Source: Macrostomum hystrix (Eukaryota; Animalia; Platyhelminthes). Taken from it: a stretch of DNA of 64,000 bases. Numbering within the stretch: position 1 is the stretch's first letter; the number at the start of each line of letters is the position of its first letter. The translations under genes were made by a program, and so were the position numbers. Shown here one piece after another: positions 209 through 56,501 of the stretch. The stretch spans positions 1,736,001-1,800,000 of the forward strand of contig CATNEN010000010.1 of the NCBI GenBank assembly GCA_950097015.1. The letters are read 5' to 3'. The notes below the pieces were generated by a model. The model saw nothing but the letters and a program-made list of their open reading frames with translations. It was not told the origin of the DNA and did not search any database.

Positions 209-3200
209 CCAGCAGGCGCTGCTTAGCCGACATTCGCGATTTAACAACTTTGGCCGGCTTCTCTCCAGGGCGAACTACGCGGGCCTCTTTAAGCCAGGTC
301 TCCCTGGTGTGGCAGACGTGCACGCAGTCGCGCAAATAAAACGGCTCATTACTGGGGCTGACATTGCCCTTCGTCTGAGCGTCGTCCGGGTGGATCACCT
401 CGTACTTGAGCAGGTGCCGGCGCAGAACGTAGAGAGGATGGCCGCGAAAATCGTCCGGCCGAGAGGGCTTCGGCCGGGCAAGCAGAATGTCGGTCAGTTG
501 GCGATCCTCGGCGGCAGACAGGGCAGCGTCGGCCGGCAGCCAGCCGGACAGAGCCGCCTCCAGCCAGGCCGGCGGGGCGCGAACTTTGCGCGTCTTGGTG
601 CACCTGGAGCGATTTGGTGGTGGGCCGTTGAATATCTTAGGGAACGTGAATTCGATAGCACTGCAAATGGTTCCCATGGCAACGACCGCTTATTTAAAGT
701 AACTAGAAATTTCTGACTACATAAAAAATATTAATACACGAAACCTATAAGATGTAAAGGGGTGAAGCGGCGAGGCGAAAGCTACTGATTTCAAGTCGAC
801 AGCAGGACCACAAAAAGCCTATTCCAATGAAAAACACTATCTGGATGAAAAAACCCATTCTCAAAACCTAAAAATGCTTTTTAATAAGTTGCGGCAGTCC
901 ACAAAGCAGGTAAGACGATAAGTCAGCAAAGGCGGTGCTCCTTACCAGTCGGCATCGTAGCGCGCTGTGACATCTCTGACTCCGCCGTCGGCATCCACGG
1001 CCATTATGTAGGTGATCGGCTTGGCGATGCGAGATCCAATGTCGTCGGGCTTGTCAACGCCATCATCGCCGCTGGTACCGCAGCCGCAGTTAAATGGCAC
1101 CCAGCGCTCGGATACGAAAACTTCGCACCAGAACTCGGGCTTCGCGAGGCCAGAGTTTTCTGTACGGCGGCTTTTCTGCCTGACCAGAGGCGGCGGTTTC
1201 ATCAGCTGCGATAGACTCGGCGGCTTTGCCGAAGCCGACTTCCGCTGCGGCTGCTTTTTGGCCGGAGGCTTCTTAACGACAGGTTCGTCATCTTCTCCTT
1301 CTGACGAATCGGAGGACGGCGGCGGCGGCGGCTTCAGCGGGGCACTCTTGGCGCGGCTGGATCGGCGAAGACCTTCAGCAGCTGACGACGCAGGTTGCTG
1401 CGGAACGGATGCTGCCACATTAAAGATTTTCGTCTTTGGCAGCTCAGTGTTTTTGGTCTTCTTAGCGGGCTCCTCTTTCGGTGTTGTCACCTTGGTCTTT
1501 TTCTTGCTTTTGTTATGCATTTTCTTGTCGACAAAGTCGCCCGCCTCTGAGCCGAAATCAATGCCACCAGCGTCTTCGTCAGCCGCCGCCGATCTAGCAG
1601 ACACATTTGTCTCCCTGACCTCCATCTGGGCCAGGGCTGCTTTCGTAAGGCGAATCGGCAGCACACGCAGAGCGGAGACGAAGCGGCAGCGCGAGACGCC
1701 ACAGGCACGCAGATGGCAGACGGCGAGAACAGCACGCAGATCGGCTGCGCTTGAGCCAACGTGACCATCGGAGGCGCACCTGATGGCGGCCTCGACAGTC
1801 AGGGCCGTTCGAAGGATGCGCGGCACGCCGGAGTCGTCAACGGTCGGGTAGGAGATGGCGAACCAGTCGGCGAATCGGCGCAGATCGTCCAGCGTAGGCC
1901 CAGCCGCCAGGGCGTTTGCCAGATCAGCTGGTGTGCGCGACAAGCAGACGGCCATCAGCTGTTTATCATTGGCCAGTCGGCTGGCCAGCTGGCATCGGGC
2001 CAGCAGAGCCAGAAAGTGCACTTTGTGCAGGTTCTCAGCCAGCAGACGCTCATGCCTCCGGCGGGCCTGCTCCGCTGCGTCAGTTTTTGGCCGGGCGCCG
2101 ACCAGAACTTCAATCGCTCCACCTCCGCCGCCTCCCTCCTCAGCGTCGCCGACTTCTTCCCAATCGTCGTCATCTTCATCTTCAATGTTGTCTTGGCTTA
2201 CGTCGTCATCCAAACGACCGCTTCGACGCGACTTCGAAGGAGAGTCTTCGCGCGTTTGAGACGTTGATGCGCCCGAAGCTGAAGGACCTGCCGCAGCCGC
2301 CTGCTCCTCTTCGACGTCTTCCAGAGCCTCGAGCGCCTGGCTCCAGTCGACATCGATCGTTGACTTCGACGCCGCTAGTGGTTCTTCAATCTAGGATGTG
2401 TCAAAAACGAGGAAAGAATGATAAAAACGCAATCGTATCCTATTGCCGTTCCCATTGATTTGCTTGCTATCCCATCGCCCTCAGCTTATCCCAGTGCCTA
2501 TCCTGCTATCCCATCGCCCTCAGCTTATCCCAGTGCCTATCCTGCTATCCCAGAGCCCTCAGCTTATCCCAGTGCCTTTCCTGCTATTCCACAGCCCTCA
2601 GATTATCCCAGTGCCTTATCTGCTATTCCACAGTCCTCAGCTAATCCCAGTGCCTCACCTGCTATCCCACAGCCCTCAGATTATCTCAGGCAGTGCCTTC
2701 CGGCCCTGCAAACCCCACACCATCGCTTATACGCTACCTTCTTCTTGGACTGCCTGCTAGCCCTAGATGCTGACTGCCTTGACTGGCGCGCCTTCTTAGT
2801 CGAAATCGGGCCAGCTGGCATTGCGCTCTGAAAGTCGCTGTCATTGTCCGACTCATTCTTAGCCGGCTGCAGTTTCCGTCGCCGAGCACCGCCAGCAGGC
2901 CCACTGGCGGTGGCAGCCGGGGGAGCCGTTTCAGGCAATGCAGGAAGAGCTGTGGGTTCTGAGTCACTGTCACTGCTGCTTGTGATTGAAGAATCGTCAT
3001 TGTCCGGTACATTAACACAACTTGTCTTGGAACTTTTATTTGTCCGGATCTCGGCCATCTTGTTAGCCGTTTTGTTCAGCGAAGGTCGACTCGATTTGCC
3101 AACAACTCGTTTGGCACTGGCCGTGGCAGCAACCGATGCTCGCCGGCTTCTCTTCGCGTCTGGCTGGTTCAACGTAGCCGCACTGGCTGCCGCGGTCGTC

Positions 3201-37647: not shown

Positions 37648-39351
37648 TCACGAGATCAGAAGGTGCGGCCCCTCTCCGCCAGCCGTGTGCTCATAGTACA
37701 GCGCGGCGATGGTTCGAATCAGCGATTGAAAGCCGGGCAGCTGGTTCTGCCAGCTGTTGAGGGTCATCGGGTTGTCCAGGATGCTGAGGAAGGCCAGCAG
37801 TGTCACCGGCTGGCACATGGCCAACTGCACAGACGGATTGGCCATCAGGGCTTTGTAAAGCGGCGACTCCGGGTCTAGGCCAGCCAGTGAGTCCTCAGCC
37901 TGCTGGTCCTGACTGTCAGCTGACTGCTGCTGCTGCTGCTGCTGGCGACCTCCGAGCAGCGTCTCCAAGGCCTGCGCCTCGTCGTTGTTGTGCAATCTTA
38001 GAGCGTCAGTGACGCCGGGCTCTTCGAAGCCCATGTCTAGCAGGCGCAGGCGGAGGGCCTGGCTGGGCCGGAACTGGGCCCGGCTGTACTGCCGGAACAG
38101 CTCCAGCATGCCGGGAACGCTCAGCGGCTCCACGAAACCCTGGCCGCCTGCGAAGCAGGGTTGAGTAGGGTTGAGCATAGTAGGGCAGAGTAAGTAAAAT
38201 AATATATTTGTCGCGAGGATGCGCACGGAGCAATTCTGCCATTTCCGCTGACTCCTGAGCACACTCAGGCCCAGGGAACACAAACACACGAGTGTACATC
38301 TGCCTTGACATTTTAATCGTGCTGCCGCTTAACTGCTGAGTAGTGGAGTAGATTAGATGGAGTAGAGCTCAGAAGAATTACCTGAAGCAGCTTCACCAGC
38401 GGTCGACTCCGCAATCTGACTCGACCCTGATGTCCCGACAGGTGACGTTGGCGCCTCGGCCGCTGCCAGAGCAGTCTCGCCAGCCAGCAGGCAGTCAGTG
38501 GCGTCGGCCAGGATGTTGTGCGCCAGAGCCAGCGCCCGCCTCGCCTGGTCCTCGGGGAAGCCCATGTCAACCAGCTGGCGCAGCAGGCCGGGATCTGGCG
38601 TGGGTCTCGGAGCAGCCGGCGCCGAGCTGCCCGACCTGACCAGCTGCATCAGCTTCTCGGCGTCCGGGTGCGTGCACAGCAGGCGCTGACAGGTGTCAAT
38701 CAATGTCACCAGAGTGGGAGTCAGGGCTCGAGAGAAGGCCTGCCCTGTGATGCGCTGCGGACCGCCAGACGCACCGCCGCTGCTTCTGCCGATGGCGCCG
38801 CCCGGTGCTTCCGGCGAAGACGCCGACGGTAGCGGCGGCCGAGGCTCGAGATGCCGCGTAGCGGCTTCGATGTCCTCCAGGTTGACGTGGCTGCTGGCGC
38901 CGTTTCGTCGTCTTTCAGTGGCCAGCGAGGAGAAGGACGACTTATCGAGAAAAGTCGCAGCCGTTGAAGTCGAGGCGTCCCTGGTGCCGGGCTCAAAGCC
39001 GTCCGCTAAGAGAATCGGATCCAAGGACGACGCCGAATTCTCCGGCGACGGCGTTTGAGGTGGCGACAGCAGCGGCTGCGGCGGAGGCGGAGGCGGCAGC
39101 AGGAGCAGCTCGTCGCCTGGACGAATGCCGGCGGCCAGCAGGCTGAGGCCGGGCGAGAGTCGCCGTCCGGTGCGCACGTGCAGCAGCTGGTTCGGCTGGC
39201 CGGGCTGGAGGCCGCGATGGCCAGGAAGGGCGGCCAGGGCTCGCTCGGACACCACCGACAGCTCCGTGTCGTTGGGGAATTCGTGCGAAAATTGGGCGCC
39301 GCACTGGCTAAGCACAGTCAGCGCCAGGAGCTCCTTCATTGTGCGGCCAGG
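37648..39351 (-). CDS. UBAC1: UBA domain-containing protein 1 (KPC2). Exons 39351-38382, 38147-37648; 5' end uncertain
   Basis: Ubl-like N-region, UBA1 (LLRQLVDMGFPEDQARRAL), UBA2 (LLDMGFEEPGVTDALRLHNND) and STI1/XPC-binding-like LDPESPLYKALMANPSVQLAM..TLLAFLSILDNP, matching UBAC1 architecture. Phase-1 intron. Confidence 0.85.
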
Positions 39352-40161
39352 CTGGAAATAAAGTGCAATTTGAGAATCATTGCTATCATGGCAATGTACA
39401 TGCCTATGCATAAATAGAAAATCAGCAGATTTTTTACTTTTTTCACTAATTTGAATAGTCAAATCAGCAGATTTCTAGTTCTTTGACTAATTTGAATAAT
39501 AAAATCAACAGATTTTTTTAGTTCTTTGACTAATTTGAATATATTAAAATTCAAAGATTACTTTTTGTTCTTGAGATGCCTTGCCACACACAAGAGAGAG
39601 ACCAGTTGTTAAATGATAAATCAATTATATGAATGGTGAGTGAGTTAGCTAGAGATTACAATGCATAATATAATTTGCACATAGCATTTGATTTGATGGC
39701 CGTGCAAACAAGCTTTTAAAATGAGTCAAATCATTGGTGGACTTAAGTAAATCCACTTCTTGTTTTGATGCAGCAGACTAAATGTGATGCAGACAAAAGC
39801 ACCTAATCAATATGAATTAGTGTATTGCTTGTGCATTTTAACAGCATGATCTATTATTTAGTGACTATAAAAGTCATAGCAGTCTACTTTATTTTAATTG
39901 TCTTTATGACAGACAAGTTTGTACAATGTTTATTTTAAAGAAGTTAAAAGCAGCAGATGAAAAGACCAAAACAAGCACATGCCTGTGTAACTGCATCTGT
40001 GTGAGTGTGTGTGCTCAGGAAGAAGCAAAATGGGCAGAATTGCCTCGTCACTGGCTGGCGCCTGGCTACAGTTTTAGTGTCATCAAATGTTGAGACAGTT
40101 TCTGCAGCACTCCTGCATTTATTATTATTATTATTACTTTAGGGGATCATAATTTCGGATT

Positions 40162-42463: not shown

Positions 42464-43207
42464 ATGACTAATGGGGGAGGTTCACAGTCTCATTCAGTCA
42501 GCCTAGAAAAGTGGAAAGATGAGATCTGGGCAGATGGGAAAATAGGCTTCCATCAGGAGATTGTCACACCAGCCTTGGTGAAGTGGTGGTCGCACGCGGT
42601 GTCGCAGCTGCCAGCGGACAAGCGGGCCAGTGTGTCGGTGCTGGTCCCTCTGTGCGGCGCCTCCCGCGACCTGGCGTGGCTGCTGGACAGACCCGAGGTG
42701 TCGACCGTGGTGGGCATCGAGATCAGCGAGCTGGCATTGCAGCGCCTGCTGTCGGAGAACCCGCAGATTGGCGGGGACGCGTCGCATCGTCGATCAGTCG
42801 GTCCGGGTGTCGAGTGCTGGGAGAGCCCGGACGGTCGGCTGAAGTTCTACCTCGCAGATCTGTTCTCGGACAGTGTGCTGTCGGAGCTGAGGTCCAGCTG
42901 CCAGCTGGTGTGGGATCGCGGCTCACTGGTGGCAATTGACGTTCCCGACCGTGAGCGGTATGTGAAGTGCCTGAAGGACATGTGCGAGCCCCAGCACGTG
43001 TGGCTCATTGAGTCCGTTGAGTACGACCGCAGCAAGTATCCCGGACCGCCGCACGCCATGCCGCACGAGTGCACCCGCCGTCTTTTTGGCCCCGCCGACC
43101 ATTTGCAGCATCTGGAGTATGACTCGCGACCCGACGATGCCAAGCAGTTCGGCTTGCCGGACTTTTCCACCGTCATGTACTGCCTGACTGTGGAGTCGGT
43201 GGACTGA
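42464..43207 (+). CDS. TPMT: Thiopurine S-methyltransferase-like, copy 1 (247 aa, intronless)
   Basis: W...W..G.IGFHQ, VLVPLCG, VVGIEISE, WDRGSLVAI...R..Y, GPP: TPMT/TEHB-family motifs. Confidence 0.9.
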   Translation: MTNGGGSQSHSVSLEKWKDEIWADGKIGFHQEIVTPALVKWWSHAVSQLPADKRASVSVLVPLCGASRDLAWLLDRPEVSTVVGIEISELALQRLLSENPQIGGDASHRRSVGPGVECWESPDGRLKFYLADLFSDSVLSELRSSCQLVWDRGSLVAIDVPDRERYVKCLKDMCEPQHVWLIESVEYDRSKYPGPPHAMPHECTRRLFGPADHLQHLEYDSRPDDAKQFGLPDFSTVMYCLTVESVD

Positions 43208-44030
43208 CATGTAAAAGCTTACTGCAGCATCGGTGCAGTTTTCAATGCAATCGGGCGCCTTTGTTAAAAGATTAATGATTGATAGGGGCCTACTTCTGGT
43301 TTTCGCTGGCAAACGTTGTATTTTATAGCTCATATTAATTTAATCAAATTTTCATAATTTTGACACTTTTTTGAGCGGCACTTGGCATAACTTTCTATAC
43401 TTGATTGAATTTACAGTGTCAATGTTTATTGCCGTAGTAAAGCAATTTTTTTGTTTGTGCTTGTAATTTTAAGTGCAGCGGGTCTGTTACATTTTATTAG
43501 TATTTATTTATTGTTCAGTACCTTCTTATTTTGCTAGCTAGCTATTTTGGTTTATGATTACCAATGAGCTTAATATGACTTCATATTCATAATCATTCCT
43601 ATCTTGTATCCTAGCAGCGTTGTTGATTATTACATTTTCTATCGTGCCCTTTCTACTGAAATCTATTGATGAGTTTAGATGAGATCGTTAATTATTAAAT
43701 TGGACATCTGACCTTGGATCCGCGCATTGATTGTGCAACATTTCTATATGTACAAGTCTTGCTTGAGCTCTTAAAGATAATAAGAACTGCAAGTGAGATC
43801 TACGAGTAGATCAGTTCTTTATTTTATTTATTTAAAAGATACTTTAAATTATTTTAAAATTAAACTAATTATAAGCAGTGAGCCCTGTTCACATTAAAGA
43901 TGGCCATGCACTATGTAAAACAGCAGCCTTTATAATCATATTTGTCATATTGTAACAACTATTTGAATTTATGACATGCTACTAGACTTGCTAGATTATC
44001 AAATGACCACCCGCAGAGCAAGCGCGGGAA

Positions 44031-44768
44031 ATGAGCGACAAACCGGCTGTCGACTCAAGGATAGTTGCCCTAGACGATTGGCAAAGGTGTTGGGAAGATG
44101 ATCGAACGAAGGGCTTCCACCAGGTGGAGGCGACGCCGAGCTTGGTGAAGTGGTGGTCGCACGCAGTGTCGCAGCTTCCAGCGGACAAGCGGGCCAGTGT
44201 GTCGGTGCTGGTCCCTCTGTGCGGCGCCTCCCGCGACCTGGCGTGGCTGCTGGACAGACCCGAGGTGTCGACCGTGGTGGGCATCGAGATCAGCGAGCTG
44301 GCATTGCAGCGCCTGCTGTCGGAGAACCCGCAGATTGGCGGGGACGCGTCGCATCGTCGATCAGTCGGTCCGGGTGTCGAGTGCTGGGAGAGCCCGGACG
44401 GTCGGCTGAAGTTCTACCTCGCAGATCTGTTCTCGGACAGTGTGCTGTCGGAGCTGAGGTCCAGCTGCCAGCTGGTGTGGGATCGTTGCTCGTTTGTAGC
44501 CATCAATATTCCCGATCGCGATCGGTACGTCTTTACAATGAGGAGCATGTGCGGATTGGAGCATGTCTGGCTAATTGAGTTGGTTGAGTATGACCGCAGC
44601 GAGTACGGAGGTCCACCTCACTCCGTGTCAGCGGACTGCGTGCGCGGCCTGTTTGGTGCCGCGTTCGGTGTGCAGTTCTTGGAAAAGGTGGAGTGCGCCA
44701 CCCAGGCTGAGTATTTCAAGGTGTCGAAGTACTGGCAGCCGGTGTACGTCCTGACTAGTGTTTGCTGA
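44031..44768 (+). CDS. TPMT: TPMT-like, copy 2 (245 aa)
   Basis: Same motifs; variant WDRCSFVAI. Confidence 0.9.
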   Translation: MSDKPAVDSRIVALDDWQRCWEDDRTKGFHQVEATPSLVKWWSHAVSQLPADKRASVSVLVPLCGASRDLAWLLDRPEVSTVVGIEISELALQRLLSENPQIGGDASHRRSVGPGVECWESPDGRLKFYLADLFSDSVLSELRSSCQLVWDRCSFVAINIPDRDRYVFTMRSMCGLEHVWLIELVEYDRSEYGGPPHSVSADCVRGLFGAAFGVQFLEKVECATQAEYFKVSKYWQPVYVLTSVC

Positions 44769-45445
44769 CTTGACTGAAGCCCGATAGTCTGCCCCATACC
44801 CAGTTGCTAGATATACTTTTAGTTGCAATTTTAGCTTTCCAAAGTGCCCGTGTCTTTCATTTGACAAAATAGGGCTGAATGGAGGTGCTTAACATGCAAT
44901 GATTTCTGTTATGAAGTTCGGTGATATGCCTTTATGATTTATTTTTCTTGAATTTTAGGTTTGATTGCTCAATCAAAGTTCCGGTTCACCATGACTAATT
45001 AATTCGACGCTTTCTTAGTTTCTGCGGGAACACAAATGCAGCAATAAATTCTAACTTTTATAAACCATCATCAGTCAATAAGCTGATTTTATCAGGCCTT
45101 TCAAAAAACAAGAGTCACAACATTTTTATTTGACTGCTGTCACATGATCATATTTTTGTTATATTTTTAATTTGGTGCCACTTAAGCTTCACTAAATGAA
45201 ACCTAACTTGCTAAGTAACTTTATACCCGTTATGGGAAAACTTTATCGTCACAAGTTCCAGCCAGTGTGCTTCCTTTTTAGGGAATGCTGCACTTTTTCA
45301 TTCAGAATTTTTACAGGCGTTTAATTAACAGACGCCATCGAATGAGCTGGCAAGAATTTGAGATTTTCAGAAACCGGCGCGTGCTAATTGAAAGAAGCCC
45401 GTATCTTAATTGCATCTTTTATTTCAGCTTCAGTCTAAACACGAC

Positions 45446-46174
45446 ATGGCCGACAAGCTGCTACCGGAGAACAGTGTCAGCATCGACGACTGGAAAAACC
45501 GCTGGGCCAGAGGCACCACTAGCTTCCACCAGGTGGAGGCGACGCCGAGCTTGGTGAAGTGGTGGTCGCACGCGGTGTCGCAGCTGCCAGCGGACAAGCG
45601 GGCCAGTGTGTCGGTGCTGGTCCCTCTGTGCGGCGCCTCCCGCGACCTGGCGTGGCTGCTGGACAGACCCGAGGTGTCGACCGTGGCGGGCATCGAGATC
45701 AGCGAGCTGGCATTGCAGCGCCTGCTGTCGGAGAACCCGCAGATTGGCGGGGACGCGTCGCATCGTCGATCAGTCGGTCCGGGTGTCGAGTGCTGGGAGA
45801 GCCCGGACGGTCGGCTGAAGTTCTACCTCGCAGATCTGTTCTCGGACAGTGTGCTGTCGGAGCTGAGGTCCAGCTGCCAGCTGGTGTGGGATCGCGGCTC
45901 ACTGGTGGCAATTGACGTTCCCGACCGTGAGCGGTATGTGAAGTGCCTGAAGGACATGTGCGAGCCCCAGCACGTGTGGCTCATTGAGTCCGTTGAGTAC
46001 GATCCAGTTGAGTACGGTGGACCACCACATTCCATCTCAGCTGAATGGGCTCGCAAAATCTTCGATGGCGAGTACAGCCTGCGCTTGTTGGAGTCCGAAA
46101 ACAGTCCCGAAAAGGCCGTTGAGTTCAAGCTGTCGTGCTACTTCAAGCCGGTCTTTCTGCTCACAATTTGTTGA
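45446..46174 (+). CDS. TPMT: TPMT-like, copy 3 (242 aa)
   Basis: Same motifs; ATG at 45446 follows TTTCAG|CTTCAG. Confidence 0.9.
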   Translation: MADKLLPENSVSIDDWKNRWARGTTSFHQVEATPSLVKWWSHAVSQLPADKRASVSVLVPLCGASRDLAWLLDRPEVSTVAGIEISELALQRLLSENPQIGGDASHRRSVGPGVECWESPDGRLKFYLADLFSDSVLSELRSSCQLVWDRGSLVAIDVPDRERYVKCLKDMCEPQHVWLIESVEYDPVEYGGPPHSISAEWARKIFDGEYSLRLLESENSPEKAVEFKLSCYFKPVFLLTIC

Positions 46175-46544
46175 GTCGAGCTCAACTCACTGCTTTAATC
46201 AATATTACGCTAGCAAAGATTGACTCATTGATCAACATGAGAGACCTATATTAAGTGTTTCATTGCCAATCCAATGAAATATTCTTCAATGCAACTTTAT
46301 ATAGGTCTGTCATGTTGGTTAGTACCTTTTTATTTAATTTTTATCAAGCGAGCTACATTACCTGACTCCCTGAGGTGTTTGAAATTCAATACCACTGTTT
46401 TAAGGGTTGCCCTGTCTCTTTTAGAATTTCTAGCTTTTTGTAGTTTCGTTGATTCTGGACTTACTTCAGAGGTATTCTCCTCCTCAATACTTATGCGCTT
46501 TTTTATCGATTAAATGCTCTTAATTTGGTTCCGGCTCTGCACGG

Positions 46545-46870
46545 CAATGCTGGGGGTGAGTGGCAGAGCGAATTTGCCTCTCATGTTTACCAAGGTCCCT
46601 GAACTCGATTCCGCGGTGAGGCCACATTAATTTGGGGCGCAGTCGCGGAGAGAAGGCTTGGGGGCTTGTGCTATCTTACGTTATTGTGGACGAACCTCCA
46701 AGACACAGCGAAAGTGTACACTGCCTGACTATCAGAACGTCAAGGCAGATGTACACCACTGTGTGTGTGTGTGTGTGCGCAGGAATCAGCGAAATGGGCA
46801 GATTGGCATCCTCGTTGGCTGGGGGTCTTGTCTCGCTAAATGATATCGCATTGCCCGCAGCCCTCCTGCA
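46545..46870 (+). mobile_element. Probable SINE (tRNA-like head, body, (GT)n)
   Basis: A/B-box-like gtggcagagcg..ctcgattcc; the body is shared with copies at 38222-38309 (-) and about 40000-40070 (+). Confidence 0.45.
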
Positions 46871-46949
46871 ATTTCTATTATTGCTGCAGAGCAATTCTTA
46901 TCAAATTCAATTGTTCACATTTAGGTTGCTTTCAATGCTTTTCCAGCGC

Positions 46950-47230
46950 CAACAGCAGTACTGGGGCAAGCGACCATTCTCTATTCGAGATCAACGACTG
47001 CAAGAACCACTGTGCCAGAAGACGAGTCTGGTGAAGTGGTGGTTTCAGGTGTGGCTGCTGGATTAGAACCTCAGCTGTCTGGGATCCGTTCTCGCACATT
47101 CTGCTGTCGAAGCTGATGTTCAAGGAGCTCCGTGCTTGGCTGATGGAGTATGACCGCAGTGATTTGGGATGTCATCAGAGGGCGTGAGTAGCCTGCTCTA
47201 CGCCGAGAACAGCGCAGGACTGCAGCTTGG
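46950..47230 (+). pseudogene. Decayed, internally deleted fifth TPMT copy
   Basis: Colinear remnants: tctggtgaagtggtggt, gtgtggctgctgga, cagctgtctgggatccg, gcttggctgatggag, tatgaccgcagtga; contains stops and large deletions. Confidence 0.7.
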
Positions 47231-47771
47231 AGTGATAGACCTTGGGATATACCAGTATATAGTTAGTGATTTTGTAGTCTAAAATTTAATCACTTTAATC
47301 AATTTAACAGCAGATGTGTGATTTCATGTACTTAAGAATTGGATTAATACATTTTTTCTGATATTTTAAGCATTTTTGGCCAGATTGTGAACGTATTTGG
47401 TGCATACAAGTGATATAATTATATCTAATTTGCCAGTTTCACATAAGTTTGCCATCACTGAGCAGCCAACACGTGCGATGTATTTTTGCTTTACTTTTTT
47501 GTCCTAAGAAGTGTATTAATTTGTCTTGTATAAAGTATTTAACCACATCTAGACTTATCTCAGAAATTTTAACCTCCGAAACATATTGTAAAACATAAGA
47601 CCCATTTGCAGGGCAATGGGCAGTTTAAACAAATAGAGATAGTATTGCTTTGGTATCTAATGGTATTTTTCCGCATAGTATGCTACTATACTGAAAACCT
47701 ACCTAAACAGTCGAGCGTAGTCGTTTAACAAAAATGTGCTATTCATTTCAGACTCACCTGCAAATTCAGCA

Positions 47772-48512
47772 ATGTCTGATAATCAAGACAATCTGCCTCT
47801 AAAATCGAAGGCTGTCAGTCCTGACGAATGGAAGGCTCGCTGGGCGGCCGGCGCGACAGGCTTCCACCAGGACACAGTCACGCACGGCTTGGTTGAGTAC
47901 TGGTCGCACGCGGTGTCGCAGCTGCCAGCGGACAAGCGGGCCAGTGTGTCGGTGCTGGTCCCTCTGTGCGGCGCCTCCCGCGACCTGGCGTGGCTGCTGG
48001 ACAGACCCGAGGTGTCGACCGTGGCGGGCATCGAGATCAGCGAGCTGGCATTGCAGCGCCTGCTGTCGGAGAACCCGCAGATTGGTGGGGACGCGTCGCA
48101 TCGTCGATCAGTCGGTCCGGGTGTCGAGTGCTGGGAGAGCCCGGACGGTCGGCTGAAGTTCTACCTCGCAGATCTGTTCTCGGACAGTGTGCTGTCGGAG
48201 CTGAGGTCCAGCTGCCAGCTGGTGTGGGATCGCGCATCTCTGGTTGCCATGGACATCCCGAATCGCGAGAGATACATCAGCCGTCTGAGAGAACTGTGCG
48301 AGCCCCGGCACGCTTGGCTGATGGAGCTGGTCGATTACGACAGCAGCCTGTACGCCGGTCCGCCGCACGCCATCCCGGATGCGTGCGCCCGGAGCCTGTT
48401 TGGCGGTCAGTACCGCGTGGAGCTGCTCGGATCATTGGAGGATCCGCAGAAAGCGGCGAAGTTCAAAGTGCCAGTCTTCAACCAGCCAGTGTACTTTATG
48501 TCAGATCTGTGA
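47772..48512 (+). CDS. TPMT: TPMT-like, copy 4 (246 aa)
   Basis: Same motifs; variant WDRASLVAM. Confidence 0.9.
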   Translation: MSDNQDNLPLKSKAVSPDEWKARWAAGATGFHQDTVTHGLVEYWSHAVSQLPADKRASVSVLVPLCGASRDLAWLLDRPEVSTVAGIEISELALQRLLSENPQIGGDASHRRSVGPGVECWESPDGRLKFYLADLFSDSVLSELRSSCQLVWDRASLVAMDIPNRERYISRLRELCEPRHAWLMELVDYDSSLYAGPPHAIPDACARSLFGGQYRVELLGSLEDPQKAAKFKVPVFNQPVYFMSDL

Positions 48513-49218
48513 ACTGCCGCACTTGAATCGGCGCGTGAAACGCTTTTATCGATTCCTTTAAGGCACAAAATTGTTCTGGCATGGAGTGTAAGATTCATCA
48601 GCGTTTTTGATTCCAGTAGTGAAATTTCAGACAGTGTTTGCATTGCTAATCCACGACTTTCTTGCAAATAAAAGACTGAAACCTTAGCCAGCTTTGGTGC
48701 TATCGCTCACACTAACTCTTATATTGAATCACAACATTATTTCATCTGTTCTTGCATATTTCTTTGACGTTTCCTGTACAAACAGACGAAACACTTGCAC
48801 TGGTAGCCAGCTTAAATATTCCACTATTGTACTAGTCCTCGCATGTTAGAAATCAAGCCATAATAGGCTGATAGCGGGCTTAGCTTAGCAAGATTTTCCT
48901 TCTAAATATAATTGCGTTGACACGAAAATAATATTCTGAATATGCACTTCACATTTTTAATTAGAGCAAAGTCATTTGAGATCATATACGAAGTATGATT
49001 AAAGAAGTAGTGTTATATGTCATTTTTACCTGTAAAATATACAGTCACTAGCGACACGTGAATTAAGAGTCCATTGCTGTGTTTTCTGTCAGCGAAGCAA
49101 CTTTCCGGTATAAGATAATTTTCTCAATACACCAGCGGTCGGCAAGTTTGTTCGATGTGCCTTGCGGGTCAAATAGAGAATCCAAGAAACGACAGCTGAT
49201 TGAATTGAATTGACTGAC

Positions 49219-50496
49219 GAGAAGAGAAGAGATGAGATAGGGCAGAGAAGAGATGAGATAGGGCAGAGAAGAGTTGAGATAGGGCGGAGAAGAGATGAGA
49301 TAGGGCAGAGAAGAGATGAGATAGGGCAGAGAAGAGATTAGATAGGGCAGAGAAGAGATGAGATAGGGCAGAGAAGAGATTAGATAGGGCAGAGAAGAGA
49401 TTAGATAGGGCGGAGAAGAGATGAGATAGGGCAGAGAAGAGATGAGATAGGGCGGAGAAGAGATGAGATAGGGCAGAGAAGAGATTAGATAGGGCAGAGA
49501 AGAGATGAGATAGGGCAGAGAAGAGATGAGATAGGGCAGAGAAGAGATTAGATAGGGCGGAGAAGAGATTAGATAGGGCAGAGAAGAGATGAGATAGGGC
49601 GGAGAAGAGATGAGATAGGGCAGAGAAGAGATGAGATAGGGCAGAGAAGAGATGAGATAGGCCAGAGAAGAGATTAGATAGGCCAGAGAAGAGATTAGAT
49701 AGGGCAGAGAAGAGATTAGATAGGGCAGAGAAGAGATGAGATAGGGCGGAGAAGAGATTAGATAGGGCAGACAAGAGATGAGATAGGGCAGAGAAGAGAT
49801 GAGATAGGGCGGAGAAGAGATGAGATAGGGCAGAGAAGAGATGAGATAGGGCGGAGAAGAGATGAGATAGGGCAGAGAAGAGATGAGATAGGGCGGAGAA
49901 GAGATGAGATAGGGCAGAGAAGAGATTAGATAGGGCAGAGAAGAGATTAGATAGGGCAGAGAAGAGATGAGATAGGGCAGAGAAGAGATGAGATAGGGCG
50001 GAGAAGAGATTAGATAGGGCAGAGAAGAGATGAGATAGGGCAGAGAAGAGATGAGATAGGGCAGAGAAGAGATGAGATAGGGCGGAGAAGAGATTAGATA
50101 GGGCGGAGAAGAGATGAGATAGGGCGGAGAAGAGATGAGATAGGGCAGAGAAGTGATGAGATAGGGCGGAGAAGAGATGAGATAGGGCAGAGAAGAGATG
50201 AGATAGGGCAGAGAAGAGATGAGATAGGCCAGAGAAGAGATTAGATAGGCCAGAGAAGAGATGAGATAGGGCAGAGAAGAGATGAGATAGGCCAGAGAAG
50301 AGATTAGATAGGGCAGAGAAGAGATGAGATAGGGCGGAGAAGAGATGAGATAGGCCAGAGAAGAGATGAGATAGGGCGGAGAAGAGATGAGATAGGGCAG
50401 AGAAGAGATTAGATAGGGCAGAGAAGAGATTAGATAGGGCAGAGAAGAGATGAGATAGGGCGGAGAAGAGATTAGATAGGGCAGAGAAGAGATGAG
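49219..50496. repeat. 21-bp purine-rich minisatellite (~61 copies)
   Basis: Unit gagaagagat(g/t)agataggg(ca/cg); source of the spurious (LFSALSH)n ORF. Confidence 0.96.
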
Positions 50497-50736
50497 AGAG
50501 ATAGTGCGGAGAAGAGACGGAGAGATGAGATTTCGGATGAGATGAAGGCAAATAAGAGACGGAGAGTTAATTGAAGGGTCAGAGTTTGAGTTCAGAGAAG
50601 CAGGGTTTGTTGACCTCTGATAAGCAGTGCAACAGTTATATAGATAAAATACGGTCGTATGTCTGATAACCTGAATTGTGATTTAACAATAGCAAGTCAG
50701 CTTTCTAAGCAAAAGGCTAACGATGACGTCATCGAA

Positions 50737-53700
50737 TTATTTCTCGCCGCGAGCCGCCTCAATCCGTCGCAGAGTGTCCAGGAACAGCCGGCGCCTGTAT
50801 CGATCCCAGTCGGCCTGGCAGCGGTAGTTGCCCTCGAACACCGCCTCCTCCGGGTAGGGCCGGGCCACCTCCCGGACGTCGCGTCGCACCTGCTCGGTGG
50901 CGTGCTGTATAAAGAAGGCCTTGCTAAGCAGGACGCACTCGGCACCATTGCTCACCTGCGTTACATTTGATTGTTTCGGGGTTTTGTCTCACTGCTTCAA
51001 GTCTGTGAAGCCATGTCTTGTCAAGCTCGTCAAAAATTGCAGTCGTTTGTTGCAAATGATGTACATCAAGCTAATGCTTTGGTTTGATTTTCTCTCTCCA
51101 CCCCGTCCGCCGCTGAAACTACGAGATAATATAATTTCCAGCCCTCAAGCTTCCGTTTGGCCCATAGACATATCTTTAACCTGCCATTAACAGAGTCGGG
51201 TAGAGTTCTCGGGGTTAACCCACCGATTCTAAAAACATCATAAGGCCAAAGGGTGACTGGACGGCGAAGGCATTTATGCACAAATGTCTATGGCCGGACC
51301 CCGTCACGCAATGCACACGTGCACGAGTCAAGCACCAATGGAAGAAGAAAACGGGTCGCTTCGTTTCTTGGAAAATTTATTAAAGGCAGATTTTTACTGA
51401 AAAAATAGCGCTAGCGAGATTGGAAATTTTCCTATCTTGAAATATGAAATATGAAATATGAAATCAGCTCATATCGAATTCCCAAACTCACCAGAGCTAC
51501 GCTGGCGCTCGCCTCAATTTCCGGATTGCTTTCGCCTTTGAAGATCACATCGGACAGTCCCTGTGGCGATGCCAGAAGGAAGTAATTGTCTATCTTTATT
51601 GGAATGTACATTAGTTCAATAGAAGCTTCGAGTTCACTGAAATTTATCACCAGGGAAGACAGTAAAGTCTTCATCGAACACAGTGATGCTGGAATCAAGA
51701 CAAAAATCAACAGCGAGAACAAACAGGCAATTCAGTATCCCAATCCACTTCATATTTAAGTACAGTTGAAATTATAGGTACAGCACTTCGCGTCCAATTT
51801 CAAAATTAAAATTTCTGAGAAATCTCCCAATTTTGATTTTCGAACTGCAGAAGACATACCAAACTTCTTAGTGTTGCAAACACTTTGCAATAGGCCATAA
51901 CGCGCCCCAGAGCAGCAAAGCATTTTTTGGGATTAATTTCCGGACTCAGCTGTCCAGCCCCTTTTGTTGCTGCAGTTCCTCTGGAACTTATTAAAACTAC
52001 AATCAAAGAGCTTCAATTGATGCACTTCTAATCCGCGGGAGAAAAAAAAACTCTCAACTCACAAAAACGTCACCGGGCTTCAGTGTGCTGATTTGCACAG
52101 CCACGATGGTCTTCTCCACAGCGATTCCACCGCCGTCAACGCCGCCACCAGGCTCCGTCGCGTTCATCGGCAATCGTCTGCGCAGCTGAGGCCGCTCTGT
52201 CTCGTCCTCATCGGCTGCCTCAGTGACCGTGTGCAGCTGGTGATGCGGCCGCGAAACCTCCAGAACCGTGCCCCTGCCACAGCCGTTCTCGTGTCTAGAA
52301 ACCTGCAGCTGGACCTGATTCGGATGCTGACGCTGTTGCTCCCCGCTACTGGATGCCGCCAAGGAGGCAGCGAAGGTCTGCGGTCTTCTACGCCAGGAGT
52401 CCACCTTGGCCTCTGAGGAATTTATAACAAAGTGGCTTGATCACTGTGGGTGTTTGGTGTCAGCGCTTGCAGCCCAGTGGTTAGAGCTTTGGACTTCTGA
52501 CCGAGATATCGCGAGTTCAAATCTCAGCCGAGGGGAAAAGTGCTTGCGTCCATAAGCAAGACACTGTATTGCACATAGCTTCAGGTCAACAAGTGTAGAG
52601 AGTAATAAATTCATACAGTATGCTTAACGCGCAACCTGAAGCAATATTACGGGAAAATCTAAGCTATAAGTGTTAATATATATTTAGAAATGAGTCATGA
52701 TGATTCGTATGCTATTTTTAGGAATGAGTCATACTGAGTCATGTACTATTTTTAGAAACGATGTCATGTGACTTAAAATATTACAGGAGGATCTATTAGA
52801 GAGACCCTAGAGAGTTTTTAATTGTTTACTTGGGCGCACAATTCTATTGTGAATTCCGAGCTCGAGGAAACCGTCACGTAATCTGATTCGCTCTCGTCCT
52901 TTTCTGGCCAATTGATAAAGTCAAGCGCAACAGACCGGATCGACAAGCAGCTGCTACGAAGACTCCGAAGACAAGAATCTACTGACCCAGAACTCCGAGA
53001 AGACACGGTCGACCAATAAGCGGAAGAACCGCCGGCTTAAGAAGAGGAACCTACTGCAGTCTTACGTGACTTTTGTAAATTCATAGACAATCGTCCCCCA
53101 TTGTTTAGAAGAGGGTGCTTTATGTGCCTGATCAACACACCAAAATCTTCACAAGCTGCACTATGGGTTGCTGCATCAGCTGCAGGGAAATTCGACGGCT
53201 AGTCGATTGACTGGAACTATACGCAGCCTTTGTAAGCGCTTAGTTGTAAATTATTTTATCTATCCTGATGTCCGATCTCAATTTTTCTACGCCAAATAAA
53301 TTAGGTGAAAATTACTGGTGTCAGAAATTGACTTCAAAAGATTAACTCACCAGTCCTGCCCACGTCGCTGCCGAAGCTAACACCGCTGAGCTTGCCCCGG
53401 TCCGTTCCGCCGCCGCCGCCGGCGCCAAAATCTTCGCCGTCACCCGCGCCGCTGTCAGCAGCCAGGTGCAGATTCTTGACCACCCGGCAGGAGCCGGAGC
53501 GCACCACCACCAGGTGCGGATGCGTCTTGCTGTCCGGCGCAATCAGCGCGTTGCGCCGGTAGAAGGTGAGCAGACAGGCTGACGGATTCTGCGTCAGGCG
53601 CTCCAGCGGGAAGCTGCGCATGAAGCCGCAGCCGGCCAGGAACTCCACGTGGCCAGGCAGCAGCCGGCCTGGCTCCGGCTTCGCGAAGATCTCGTTGAAC

Positions 53701-56501
53701 TCCTCGCGACCGATGACGAGCAGCTGGGCGGCGTCCTGGCTGACCACGCTGGCTGTGCGGGCCACCTGGCGCAGCAGGGCCACCTCGCCGAATGACTGAC
53801 CCTGGCAAGTTTGTGGTGAGGACTCGTGTGGTTGTTGGGAAAGCCGAGCGCTTCAATTCCCTGCTCTGTTAGTTTCTGGGCGTAAAACATGTTGCCCTAG
53901 AATTACCGGACCGGACATTTGGTTCCTGTCTAATTCTCTGGTACATCTGTGGATCTCCCCAAGGTTAGCAGACAAAGATCTTAAAATCCTATATTTCAGT
54001 TATGATTTTACTCACTGAATTGTGAAAGGCTCAAGGCCCGGCAGATTCAAGAGGTGAACTCATGCGCTGATTTATTTTGGCTCGCTCAGCAGTCTCAAGG
54101 CGCATCCGAAGGCTGTGTACGGCTGTCCATGGACTGGGGAGACGCCACGCCCACCCTTAAGTACCCCAGCTAATGCTGGTACCCATTTTATAGCTTGGGT
54201 GAACATAGCAATGCAGAGTTAAGTGACTTGCTAAAAGTTAAAAATTGTTCGCGTGAAGTCGGGAATCGAACTCACGACCTTTAAGTCGTGAATCCGAAGA
54301 TCTACTTCTCCTAGCACAGTTCTTTGTTTTTGTACTATTAAGTCTCGAATTGAAGCATTTAAGAGCTAGAGGTGCAACAGAAATGCAGCAGTCAGAGCAG
54401 GCTGCCTACCTGTCCCAGCCTTGCCACAATATTGGTCCGGGTCTCCCCGGTCCGCCGGTCCTCCTGCAGAACACTGACAATGACCCGGCCGCGGATGATA
54501 ATGTAGAAGTTCACTCCGATGTGGCCCTGCCGGATGATGAGCCGGCCGGGCGGCACCGACTGGTAGAAGGCCACGCGAGCCAGCTTCTCCTGGGTGCGCA
54601 GAGGGTACTCATTGAAGGTTGGCAGGCTCTGGAGGCCGTACATCACCGTCTGCACCTGCTCCGGTGTGCGCGCCTGCGGCTCCAGCTGCAGGATGGCCTT
54701 CATTTCACCTGTCAGGTCGATCTGGATTGGGGTGGGGTCGAAGAGATGTCAGTGTCTACCTTGGCGTTTTCACACGGCAGATTTCTGCACTTTTATCAAT
54801 CCGTTTCTCACCTCGCGTTTGGCCCGAAAGTAGGATAGGTCAAAGGTGAGATCCGAGTCTTCCGTGCTGAAGCCCTTCAATGTGTCAACCACTTTCACGC
54901 TTTCATCGTCGCTGTAGTTCTTCCTGTTGGTTAGGCATTTATTTGGGACTTGAGGTTTATTCGACTGGTCTTACAATCCCCTTTTCCGTGAGAAAACTTT
55001 CGCCAAATAATTAAACTTTCGGATGGTATTTTCTCTCCATGGACATCGTTTGTGAGAAAATCGTTTCCATAAGTGCTGTGCTACTGAAGACCGCGATTCG
55101 ATCATTTATTTATCATTTATCTGACTTAATCACCTATAGCCACCTATAGCTACATCAAATGAGTTGTAGCCTAGTATTTTGAACGTCGGACTCACAATTG
55201 AAGGTCGAGGGTTCGATTCCCGACTCCATTGGAACGATTCCCGAGTCCTTTAGCAAGCCACTAACTCAGTGCTGTGATTCAGTTCAGCCAGCTGTTAAAT
55301 GTTATGGTACCAGCTTTAGCTGGGGTCATTGAGGGTGGGTGTGCTGGCCCTCCAGTTCATGGACTCAACAGCCTTCAGATGGCCGCTGCTGTGCTATCGG
55401 CCAGCCTCCATTCCCTCGGTCAGGACTCCCCAAAGCTAGCCGTAAATTTTCGCGCCAAGGTGAACCAAAATAAAGCAGCGCTTGAGTTCACCTCTTAAGC
55501 ATCACGCGAATCCAGCTGACCATGATGACCACCAGGCGAATCGTCTTGCCAAACCTGGCCGCTGCCTGGAAACGAGGGGTTGAGGCGGTGGCCGCAGTGC
55601 GGCTCTCATGGATTAGTGATGTCCGCCCGGCTGTCTTAGGCCCGGCTGCATTGGCAACGGCTGCGCGATTATCCCAGAGATAGTGACAGCGTCAAGTGGG
55701 TCGCTGAGTAGAGAACTCATGGGGCTGCAGTAGGGATGGCGCGGGGGACTCCACCCGTCCTATTTCGTTGAATAATTCAGCGCATGTTGTTTCACGCCCC
55801 CAAACCTCTGCGCAGCTGCTCATTGTCAGACCCGCAGATCATTGCGGCTATTATAACTGGCTCTTAGATTTGAGGAGACTCTCGAGTTCTTAGGATTTCT
55901 AGGAAGATTAGTGAAATTTCTCACGCATTTCTGCAGAAAAGACATAAACAAAAATTTACGAGAAGGCTCGTAAATTGAGCCGGACATTGTTTCATCGAGA
56001 ACATGCATTTCTTCAATATTCCATTGTGAAAACTTCGCAACAGCCATGGTTGAGTAATAAAAAGTGCAATAAAAATTGCGTGGATATCGTGGAGGGACAC
56101 TTGCGATGGCTGCATTTTAGAGTTTTATATGGGTTTACGATTCTCTGCCGCTGCATCTCCCTCAGCTCCCGTCGTGTCAGTCGTCCACCTCCGCCGGCCG
56201 CGTGCTGATCATGACGCTCTTGATGATCGCCAGCCAGATGTTGATGCTGCTGATCGTGGTGCTGGTCGCGCTGGTCGAGGTGGTGGTGCAGAGCGGTGTC
56301 CCGGTGCTGACTCTGGCCGTGTGGGTCAGTGCACGGGAGCAGGGCTGGCAGCGAGCCCCTGGCGGCCCTCCTGCCGCCCAGGTCTATCAGAATCGGCATC
56401 ACCTGCTGCTGCTGCTGCTGCTGCTGCTCCAGAGACAACTTCGAAAGGATGCCAAAGTCACCGTCTGAACGAGAGCTTCGGCTTCGCTGAAGCAGCTCCA
56501 T
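50737..56501 (-). CDS. Cyclic nucleotide-binding domain protein (CNBD2/CRIS-like). Exons 56501-56139 (tentative), 55565-55492, 54923-54812, 54721-54410, 53801-53351, 52412-52063, 51560-51492, 50955-50737
   Basis: LTFDLSYFRAKRE; CNB1 IIRQGHIGVNFYIIIRG..GQSFGEVALLRQVARTASV; split CNB2 ..LKPGDVF|GLSDV..VAL|VSNGAECVLLSK; seven GT-AG junctions keep frame. The first exon is uncertain. Confidence 0.8.
52465..52600 (+). mobile_element. tRNA-derived SINE (intronic)
   Basis: A box cagtggttagagc, B box gagttcaaatc, poorly pairing anticodon arm, then body agcaagacact. Confidence 0.6.
54075..54315 (-). mobile_element. tRNA-derived SINE
   Basis: Reverse strand reads ggtcgtgagttcgattccc..agcaagtcacttaac..taaaatgggtaccagcattagctgggg; homologous to the 55165-55410 copy. 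Confidence 0.7.
55165..55410 (+). mobile_element. tRNA-derived SINE, same family as 54075-54315, opposite orientation
   Basis: ggtcgagggttcgattccc..agcaagccactaac..ggtaccagctttagctgggg..acagccttcagatgg. Confidence 0.7.

Follow-up and report, generated by a model that had tools for sequence, protein, structure and literature searches.

How can four neighboring genes carry one stretch of coding sequence that is almost identical in all of them when the rest of each gene is strongly diverged? This question is raised by a tandem array of four TPMT-family methyltransferase genes in the flatworm Macrostomum hystrix, which we examined in a 64,000-nucleotide stretch of M. hystrix DNA (referred to here as the window). 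We named the array copies 1 to 4 c1 to c4. The near-identity is confined to a 332-bp core, and our comparisons indicate that the array very probably consists of four old TPMT paralogs in which this core, predicted to encode the half of the enzyme that binds S-adenosylmethionine (SAM), is kept near-identical by short-tract interlocus gene conversion.

All four genes are intact, intronless open reading frames on the plus strand that begin with ATG and end with TGA: c1 (42464-43207; 247 amino acids), c2 (44031-44768; 245 amino acids), c3 (45446-46174; 242 amino acids), and c4 (47772-48512; 246 amino acids). Each matched the Pfam TPMT profile PF05724 with 121 to 130 bits against a cut-off of 26, from profile position 2 or 3 to positions 201 to 214 of 218 (E values of 2.7e-35, 7e-35, 6e-37, and 1e-37, respectively). 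The spacers between the genes had a GC content of 0.32 to 0.42. A search for further or degenerate array copies within the window found none, and the rest of the genome held one TPMT-like paralog (35% identical) on another contig and one weak match.

The core lies at 42587-42918 in c1, 44154-44485 in c2, 45563-45894 in c3, and 47901-48232 in c4, all on the plus strand, and it was found exactly four times in the whole 220-Mb assembly. Relative to c1, the core of c2 has two synonymous differences (core positions 12 and 24), that of c3 has one (position 125, Val to Ala, which is common to c4), and that of c4 has two (positions 125 and 186). Pairwise, the cores differed at 0 to 4 sites and were 98.8 to 99.7% identical. 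An earlier note on this DNA had reported these four 332-bp segments with the same coordinates and the same 2, 1, and 2 differences from c1, and we reproduced every number. Its statement that the remaining coding sequence and the spacers are strongly diverged was also borne out: outside the tract, DNA identity fell to 20 to 75% in 40-bp windows, the ends of c1 to c4 were only 55 to 65% identical, and comparison of spacer with spacer gave zero blastn matches at an E value below 0.01. When the differences of each pair were placed at random, the identical runs seen in the six pairs (146 to 315 bp) were never reached by chance (0 of 10,000 placements).

The edges of the tract are mosaic. On the 3' side, c1 and c3 are identical over a further 108 of 108 bp (42919-43026 and 45895-46002), and on the 5' side c2 and c3 are identical over a further 41 of 41 bp (44113-44153 and 45522-45562; all on the plus strand). 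In addition, c1, c2, and c3 have 13 bp more in common on the 5' side (from 42574, 44141, and 45550). The segment common to all four genes stops within codon 152, between its second and third bases; this codon, which specifies the Arg of the WDR motif, is CGT in c2 only and CGC in the others. Both longer extensions and the stop inside this Arg codon were exactly where the earlier note had put them.

A second species provides a control for this pattern. The only close relative in the protein collection was the M. lignano protein P0001, 78% identical to c4, which has a cluster-mate (P0121) on a second contig. The species comparison was therefore made with these two contigs of one other species, L011 and L012, which carry two and three array copies, respectively. 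Copies X (L012 7038-7781) and B on L012 are intact. Copy A has become a pseudogene: it has lost 24 bp of motif I, a 1-bp deletion shifts its frame, and one of its Trp codons is replaced by a stop. The ends of the genes retain orthology between the species. Those of c1 and X were 66 to 80% identical, compared with ∼50 to 57% for nonorthologs, and paired in the N-far, C-proximal, and C-distal partitions; those of c4 and B (P0001/P0121) were 74 to 78% identical, with clade support of 80 to 100. The ends of c2 grouped with the A copies of both contigs (M12_A and M11_A) in the N-far and C-distal partitions, which makes pseudogene A the c2 ortholog. Gene c3 formed a deep branch in the N-far and C-distal trees, and no c3 ortholog was present in the two M. 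lignano contigs read.

The core, in contrast to the ends, clusters by species. Core identity was 98.8 to 99.7% within M. hystrix and 94.5 to 95.1% among the three L012 copies, but 82 to 84% between species for every pair. Sites at which all paralogs of one species differ from all paralogs of the other numbered 42 in the core and 0 in the N and C ends. In approximately unbiased (AU) tests, the species tree won for the core and the orthology trees were rejected (p about 1e-5), whereas the species tree was rejected for both the N end (p 0.002) and the C end (p 7e-5). We also estimated synonymous divergence (dS) and dN/dS for each partition (core, N end, and C end) by the Nei-Gojobori method. Among c1 to c4, dS was 0 to 0.047 in the core and ranged from 0.9 to saturation in the N and C ends, where dN/dS was 0.2 to 0.6. 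Between species, core dS was 0.54 to 0.59 whichever pair was compared, and the orthologous ends had a dS of at least 0.85. The core is therefore not frozen; its copies evolve together within each species. Since the ends have saturated dS and recognizable M. lignano orthologs, their sequences place the duplications that gave rise to c1 to c4 earlier than the divergence of the two species; it is the core alone that appears young.

These values leave little room for an explanation without exchange, in which the core would be identical through extreme purifying selection at the nucleotide level, or the array would be young and its ends fast diverging. The core does carry the SAM-binding motifs conserved across the family. 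Its synonymous sites, however, are identical within species and reach a dS of 0.55 between species, and the 42 fixed differences show that the M. lignano core has been homogenized to a sequence of its own. Across 39 distant TPMTs, conservation in the core (0.44) was close to that in the ends (0.42 and 0.37), and residues 91 to 130 of the core, the most variable part of the family, are nonetheless identical in c1 to c4. We give this explanation next to no probability. Recent duplication and nucleotide-level constraint, two outcomes that the earlier note had said would refute its reading, were both ruled out by the dS partition, the AU trees, and the fixed differences: duplication fails on the contrast between ends and core in dS, and constraint fails on the species-specific M. 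lignano core. The proposal that repeated ectopic conversion homogenizes the core is thus strongly supported by these sequence comparisons, with synonymous sites homogenized along with the rest.

Three points weigh against this reading. One is that the comparison covers a single other species, and another concerns the assembly. For the published M. hystrix assembly, PacBio reads were assembled with canu; polishing was done with Arrow and with Pilon, the latter using bwa-mapped Illumina reads (PMC10468722). Short-read polishing could have erased a few copy-specific single-nucleotide polymorphisms (SNPs) in the core, so that the actual identity of the cores could lie closer to the 95% found in M. 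lignano. The third point is that GC content at third codon positions was 0.82 to 0.85 in the core and 0.51 to 0.87 in the ends, a modest excess with no clear signature of GC-biased conversion among the unpolarized changes.

The polishing procedure also makes it conceivable that the cores truly differ and were made alike by multi-mapping short reads. Such cross-mapping, however, presupposes cores that are already very similar, although the ends of the same genes are not. Four copy-specific SNPs survive in the window, and neighboring copies share variants; the core is only 332 bp long, so that most read pairs reach unique sequence. Moreover, the two M. lignano contigs, which were assembled independently, are likewise similar in the core only, and the sequence there is specific to their species. 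We consider an artifact of this kind highly improbable and reject a purely artifactual core, given the M. lignano contigs and the surviving SNPs. At most, polishing inflated identity from about 95% to 99%; it cannot create the pattern.

What form did the exchange take? The spacers and gene ends were not homogenized, and for this reason we favor short-tract, nonreciprocal exchange over turnover of whole repeat units, although the route is inferred from the sequences. The process would be concerted evolution of part of a gene (residues 42 to 152, strands 1 to 4 of the predicted fold). Conversion would have bypassed the first 41 codons, the last ∼95 codons, and all spacers, which have diverged since before the M. 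lignano split. Because the c1/c3 extension is 80% identical to the c1 ortholog X, compared with 57 to 67% between paralogue types, c1 was probably the donor of this tract and c3 the likely acceptor.

The M. lignano copies carry comparable traces. The identity of X and A continues for ∼105 bp past the 3' edge of the core on L012 only, stopping at nearly the same alignment column as the c1/c3 extension, and X and B have a further common patch of ∼65 bp in the C end. The 3' stopping point shared by c1/c3 and X/A lies at a conserved W-L-I/M-E-x-V-E-Y-D block, which suggests that tracts end where the next usable homology lies. Tract edges are probably set mainly where homology runs out: a heteroduplex would need matching anchors, and the diverged ends would offer none. 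Ends that no longer offer homology would keep the edges in place from one species to the other, and a tract would now and then run on into the next conserved block. Comparison of the two species thus suffices to show that the core is homogenized, how old this is relative to the species split, and that the ends are ancient, whereas the cause of the edges is reached indirectly.

Copy M11_A (L011 8526-9262) agreed with X as far as alignment column 238, with a single informative site as the exception, and with A from column 258 on. This one X/A switch inside the core could mark an unequal crossover in which a copy was lost, or the assembly may have collapsed at that point. The difference in copy number between L011 and L012 (two versus three; L012 7038-9273) could likewise reflect unequal crossover between homeologous or allelic arrays, or assembly collapse. 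Pseudogene A (L012 8561-9273; L011 8526-9262) has its 1-bp core deletion in both contigs and the 24-bp motif I deletion in L012 only. The same Trp codon reads TGA in L012 and TAG in L011, two different stops. Its core keeps the species-specific core sequence, so the pseudogene takes part in the exchange.

Which part of the enzyme does the core encode? By sequence, the best solved relative of c1 was human TPMT (2bzg; E value of 2e-28), ahead of Pseudomonas syringae TPMT. The AlphaFold model of c1 (confidence, pLDDT, of 91) had human and mouse TPMT as its top Foldseek matches (E value of 2e-21), followed by P. syringae TPMT and by plant and fungal halide methyltransferases. It superposed on human and mouse TPMT with template modeling (TM) scores of 0.83 to 0.89. 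The modeled fold is accordingly that of TPMT, a class I methyltransferase with an N-terminal lid. All hallmark motifs of TPMT are kept (W..W..FHQ, the PLCG loop, the Glu after strand 2, WDR, and the GPP loop), and H30, P62, L63, G65, E86, D151, R152, G194, and P196 are invariant in c1 to c4 and 45 aligned family members. In the c1 model, the core (residues 42 to 152) begins midway along the helix that follows FHQ, takes in strands 1 to 4, and includes the PLCG loop, the acidic residue of GIEIS, and WDR; the N end forms the lid, and the C end comprises the helices after strand 4 and strands 5 to 7. The core is the predicted SAM-binding half of the enzyme, and the earlier description of a cofactor-binding module with the ends outside it is sound on the c1 model and the family alignment.

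Vertebrate TPMT (human 2bzg and 2h11; mouse 2gb4 and 3bgd) resembles the array proteins in its full-length PF05724 match, in its fold, and in the same series of motifs, including the acidic residue after strand 2. It differs in several respects: identity to c1 to c4 is only ∼29 to 35%, humans have a single gene whereas M. hystrix has four intronless genes in tandem and a distant fifth copy, and the equivalent of human Arg226 is variable within the M. hystrix array. A word-based protein search returned, besides M. lignano, only bacterial TPMTs (Myxococcota and Pseudomonadota; at most 39% identity). A bacterial origin by horizontal transfer was considered because of these matches and the lack of introns. 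We do not claim it, as mammalian TPMT is at least as close (103 bits and the TM scores given above, compared with 62 bits and TM scores of 0.56 to 0.66 for P. syringae TPMT).

Does selection hold the ends apart? The earlier note had coupled conversion of the core with selection that keeps the substrate-determining ends different, yielding a modular repertoire of methyltransferases; the first part stands, and the evidence on the second is divided. In the form we weighed, conversion is real but selection removes tracts that overwrite acceptor-pocket residues, so that the edges are held in place and the genes form an adaptive repertoire of one cofactor module with several substrate modules. In the c1 model, the ends occupy the region that binds acceptors in class I methyltransferases. 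The tract edges of the two species nearly coincide, to within a few bases, but homology-limited conversion predicts equally stable edges without selection.

The ends do stay functional, with a dN/dS of 0.16 to 0.26 between orthologs. These values are those of ordinary purifying selection, however, and every dN/dS was below 0.6, with no diversifying selection. Nineteen positions in the ends are the same in c1 and X and the same in c4 and B but distinguish the two pairs, compared with 0 in the core. At the position of human Arg226, c1 to c4 have D, Q, K, and K, respectively, X has D, and B has R; in human TPMT, two polar residues lie near 6-mercaptopurine, and Arg226 is one of them (PMC7705256). 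On the other hand, the residues that correspond to human F40, R152, and P196 do not vary among the copies, and spill-over into the ends has been tolerated in both M. hystrix (108 and 41 bp) and M. lignano (∼105 and ∼65 bp). The c2 ortholog has, moreover, decayed to a pseudogene in M. lignano. Selection-held edges are a possibility that we take seriously but regard as somewhat doubtful.

A further step would be to see the core cassette as a long-lived, selectively maintained recombination hub that reshuffles N-terminal lid and C-terminal acceptor modules and so generates new substrate specificities combinatorially. This idea draws on the X/A chimera of M. lignano, the spill-over from c1 to c3, and the stability of the edges across the species split, and we think it unlikely.

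Partial conversion of this kind has precedents. Human RHD and RHCE are an example of partial interlocus conversion, and interlocus conversion in duplicates has reportedly been modeled by Innan and Teshima. Partial conversion that leaves islands of divergence is documented for the Tigriopus GOT1 paralogs (PMC3728101), the deer-mouse globins (PMC4379404), and the BEX/GASP genes (PMC1274310). As in such tandem duplicates, the M. hystrix tract is homogenized within species, synonymous sites included, the flanks keep their orthology signal, pairwise tract ends are mosaic, and crossover chimeras occur within the tract. The M. hystrix array differs in that the tract is one short 332-bp block common to four genes, in that its edges are nearly the same in two species at a dS of ∼0.55, and in that it corresponds to the cofactor-binding half of an enzyme that is small and has a single domain. 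We found no paper on gene conversion in TPMT paralogs or in Macrostomum and none naming the M. lignano genes. The array is a very clean case of a known process rather than a new mechanism.

Its interest lies in how sharply concerted evolution is limited to one half of the structure of a small enzyme, for which the orthologous array of a second species serves as a control. This makes the array a tractable system for asking whether homology or selection determines where conversion stops, and it could show whether flatworm TPMT-like enzymes diversified in acceptor choice. There are also practical consequences: whole-gene trees of c1 to c4 will mislead annotators and phylogeneticists, and short-read polishing or mapping inside the core is unreliable.

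The surroundings of the array are conserved in M. lignano. Upstream, at 38558-39366 (no strand assigned), the window contains exons of a gene that matches the gene beside the M. lignano array at L011 1-806 (74 to 90% identity by tblastx), in which Pfam recognizes a UBA domain. Downstream, a conserved gene on the minus strand (50731-54925) matches L011 11464-13675 and L012 11501-13501 with 85 to 94% tblastx identity in minus frames. On L012, a zf-BED/hAT transposase gene (974-3071) precedes the array by ∼4 kb, and on L011 the nearest called upstream gene is the UBA-domain gene.

The fifth TPMT-like gene of M. hystrix (G000:C25:5887872-5888525; L009 1255-2175) lies outside the array and lacks the 332-bp core. 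It is a single open frame, ∼35% identical to the array genes, with an N-terminal extension of ∼70 residues and a poly-Gln insert ahead of the PLCG motif.

Directly downstream of c4, at 49097-50551, is a long array of 21-bp tandem repeats, detected as at least 30 overlapping 300-nucleotide repeat copies at 21-bp spacing that are 93 to 97% alike. On its minus strand, heptads of the LFSALSH type make up an open frame of 460 amino acids. In the same neighborhood, the syntenic M. lignano loci have other short-period repeat arrays (L011 13696-16833).

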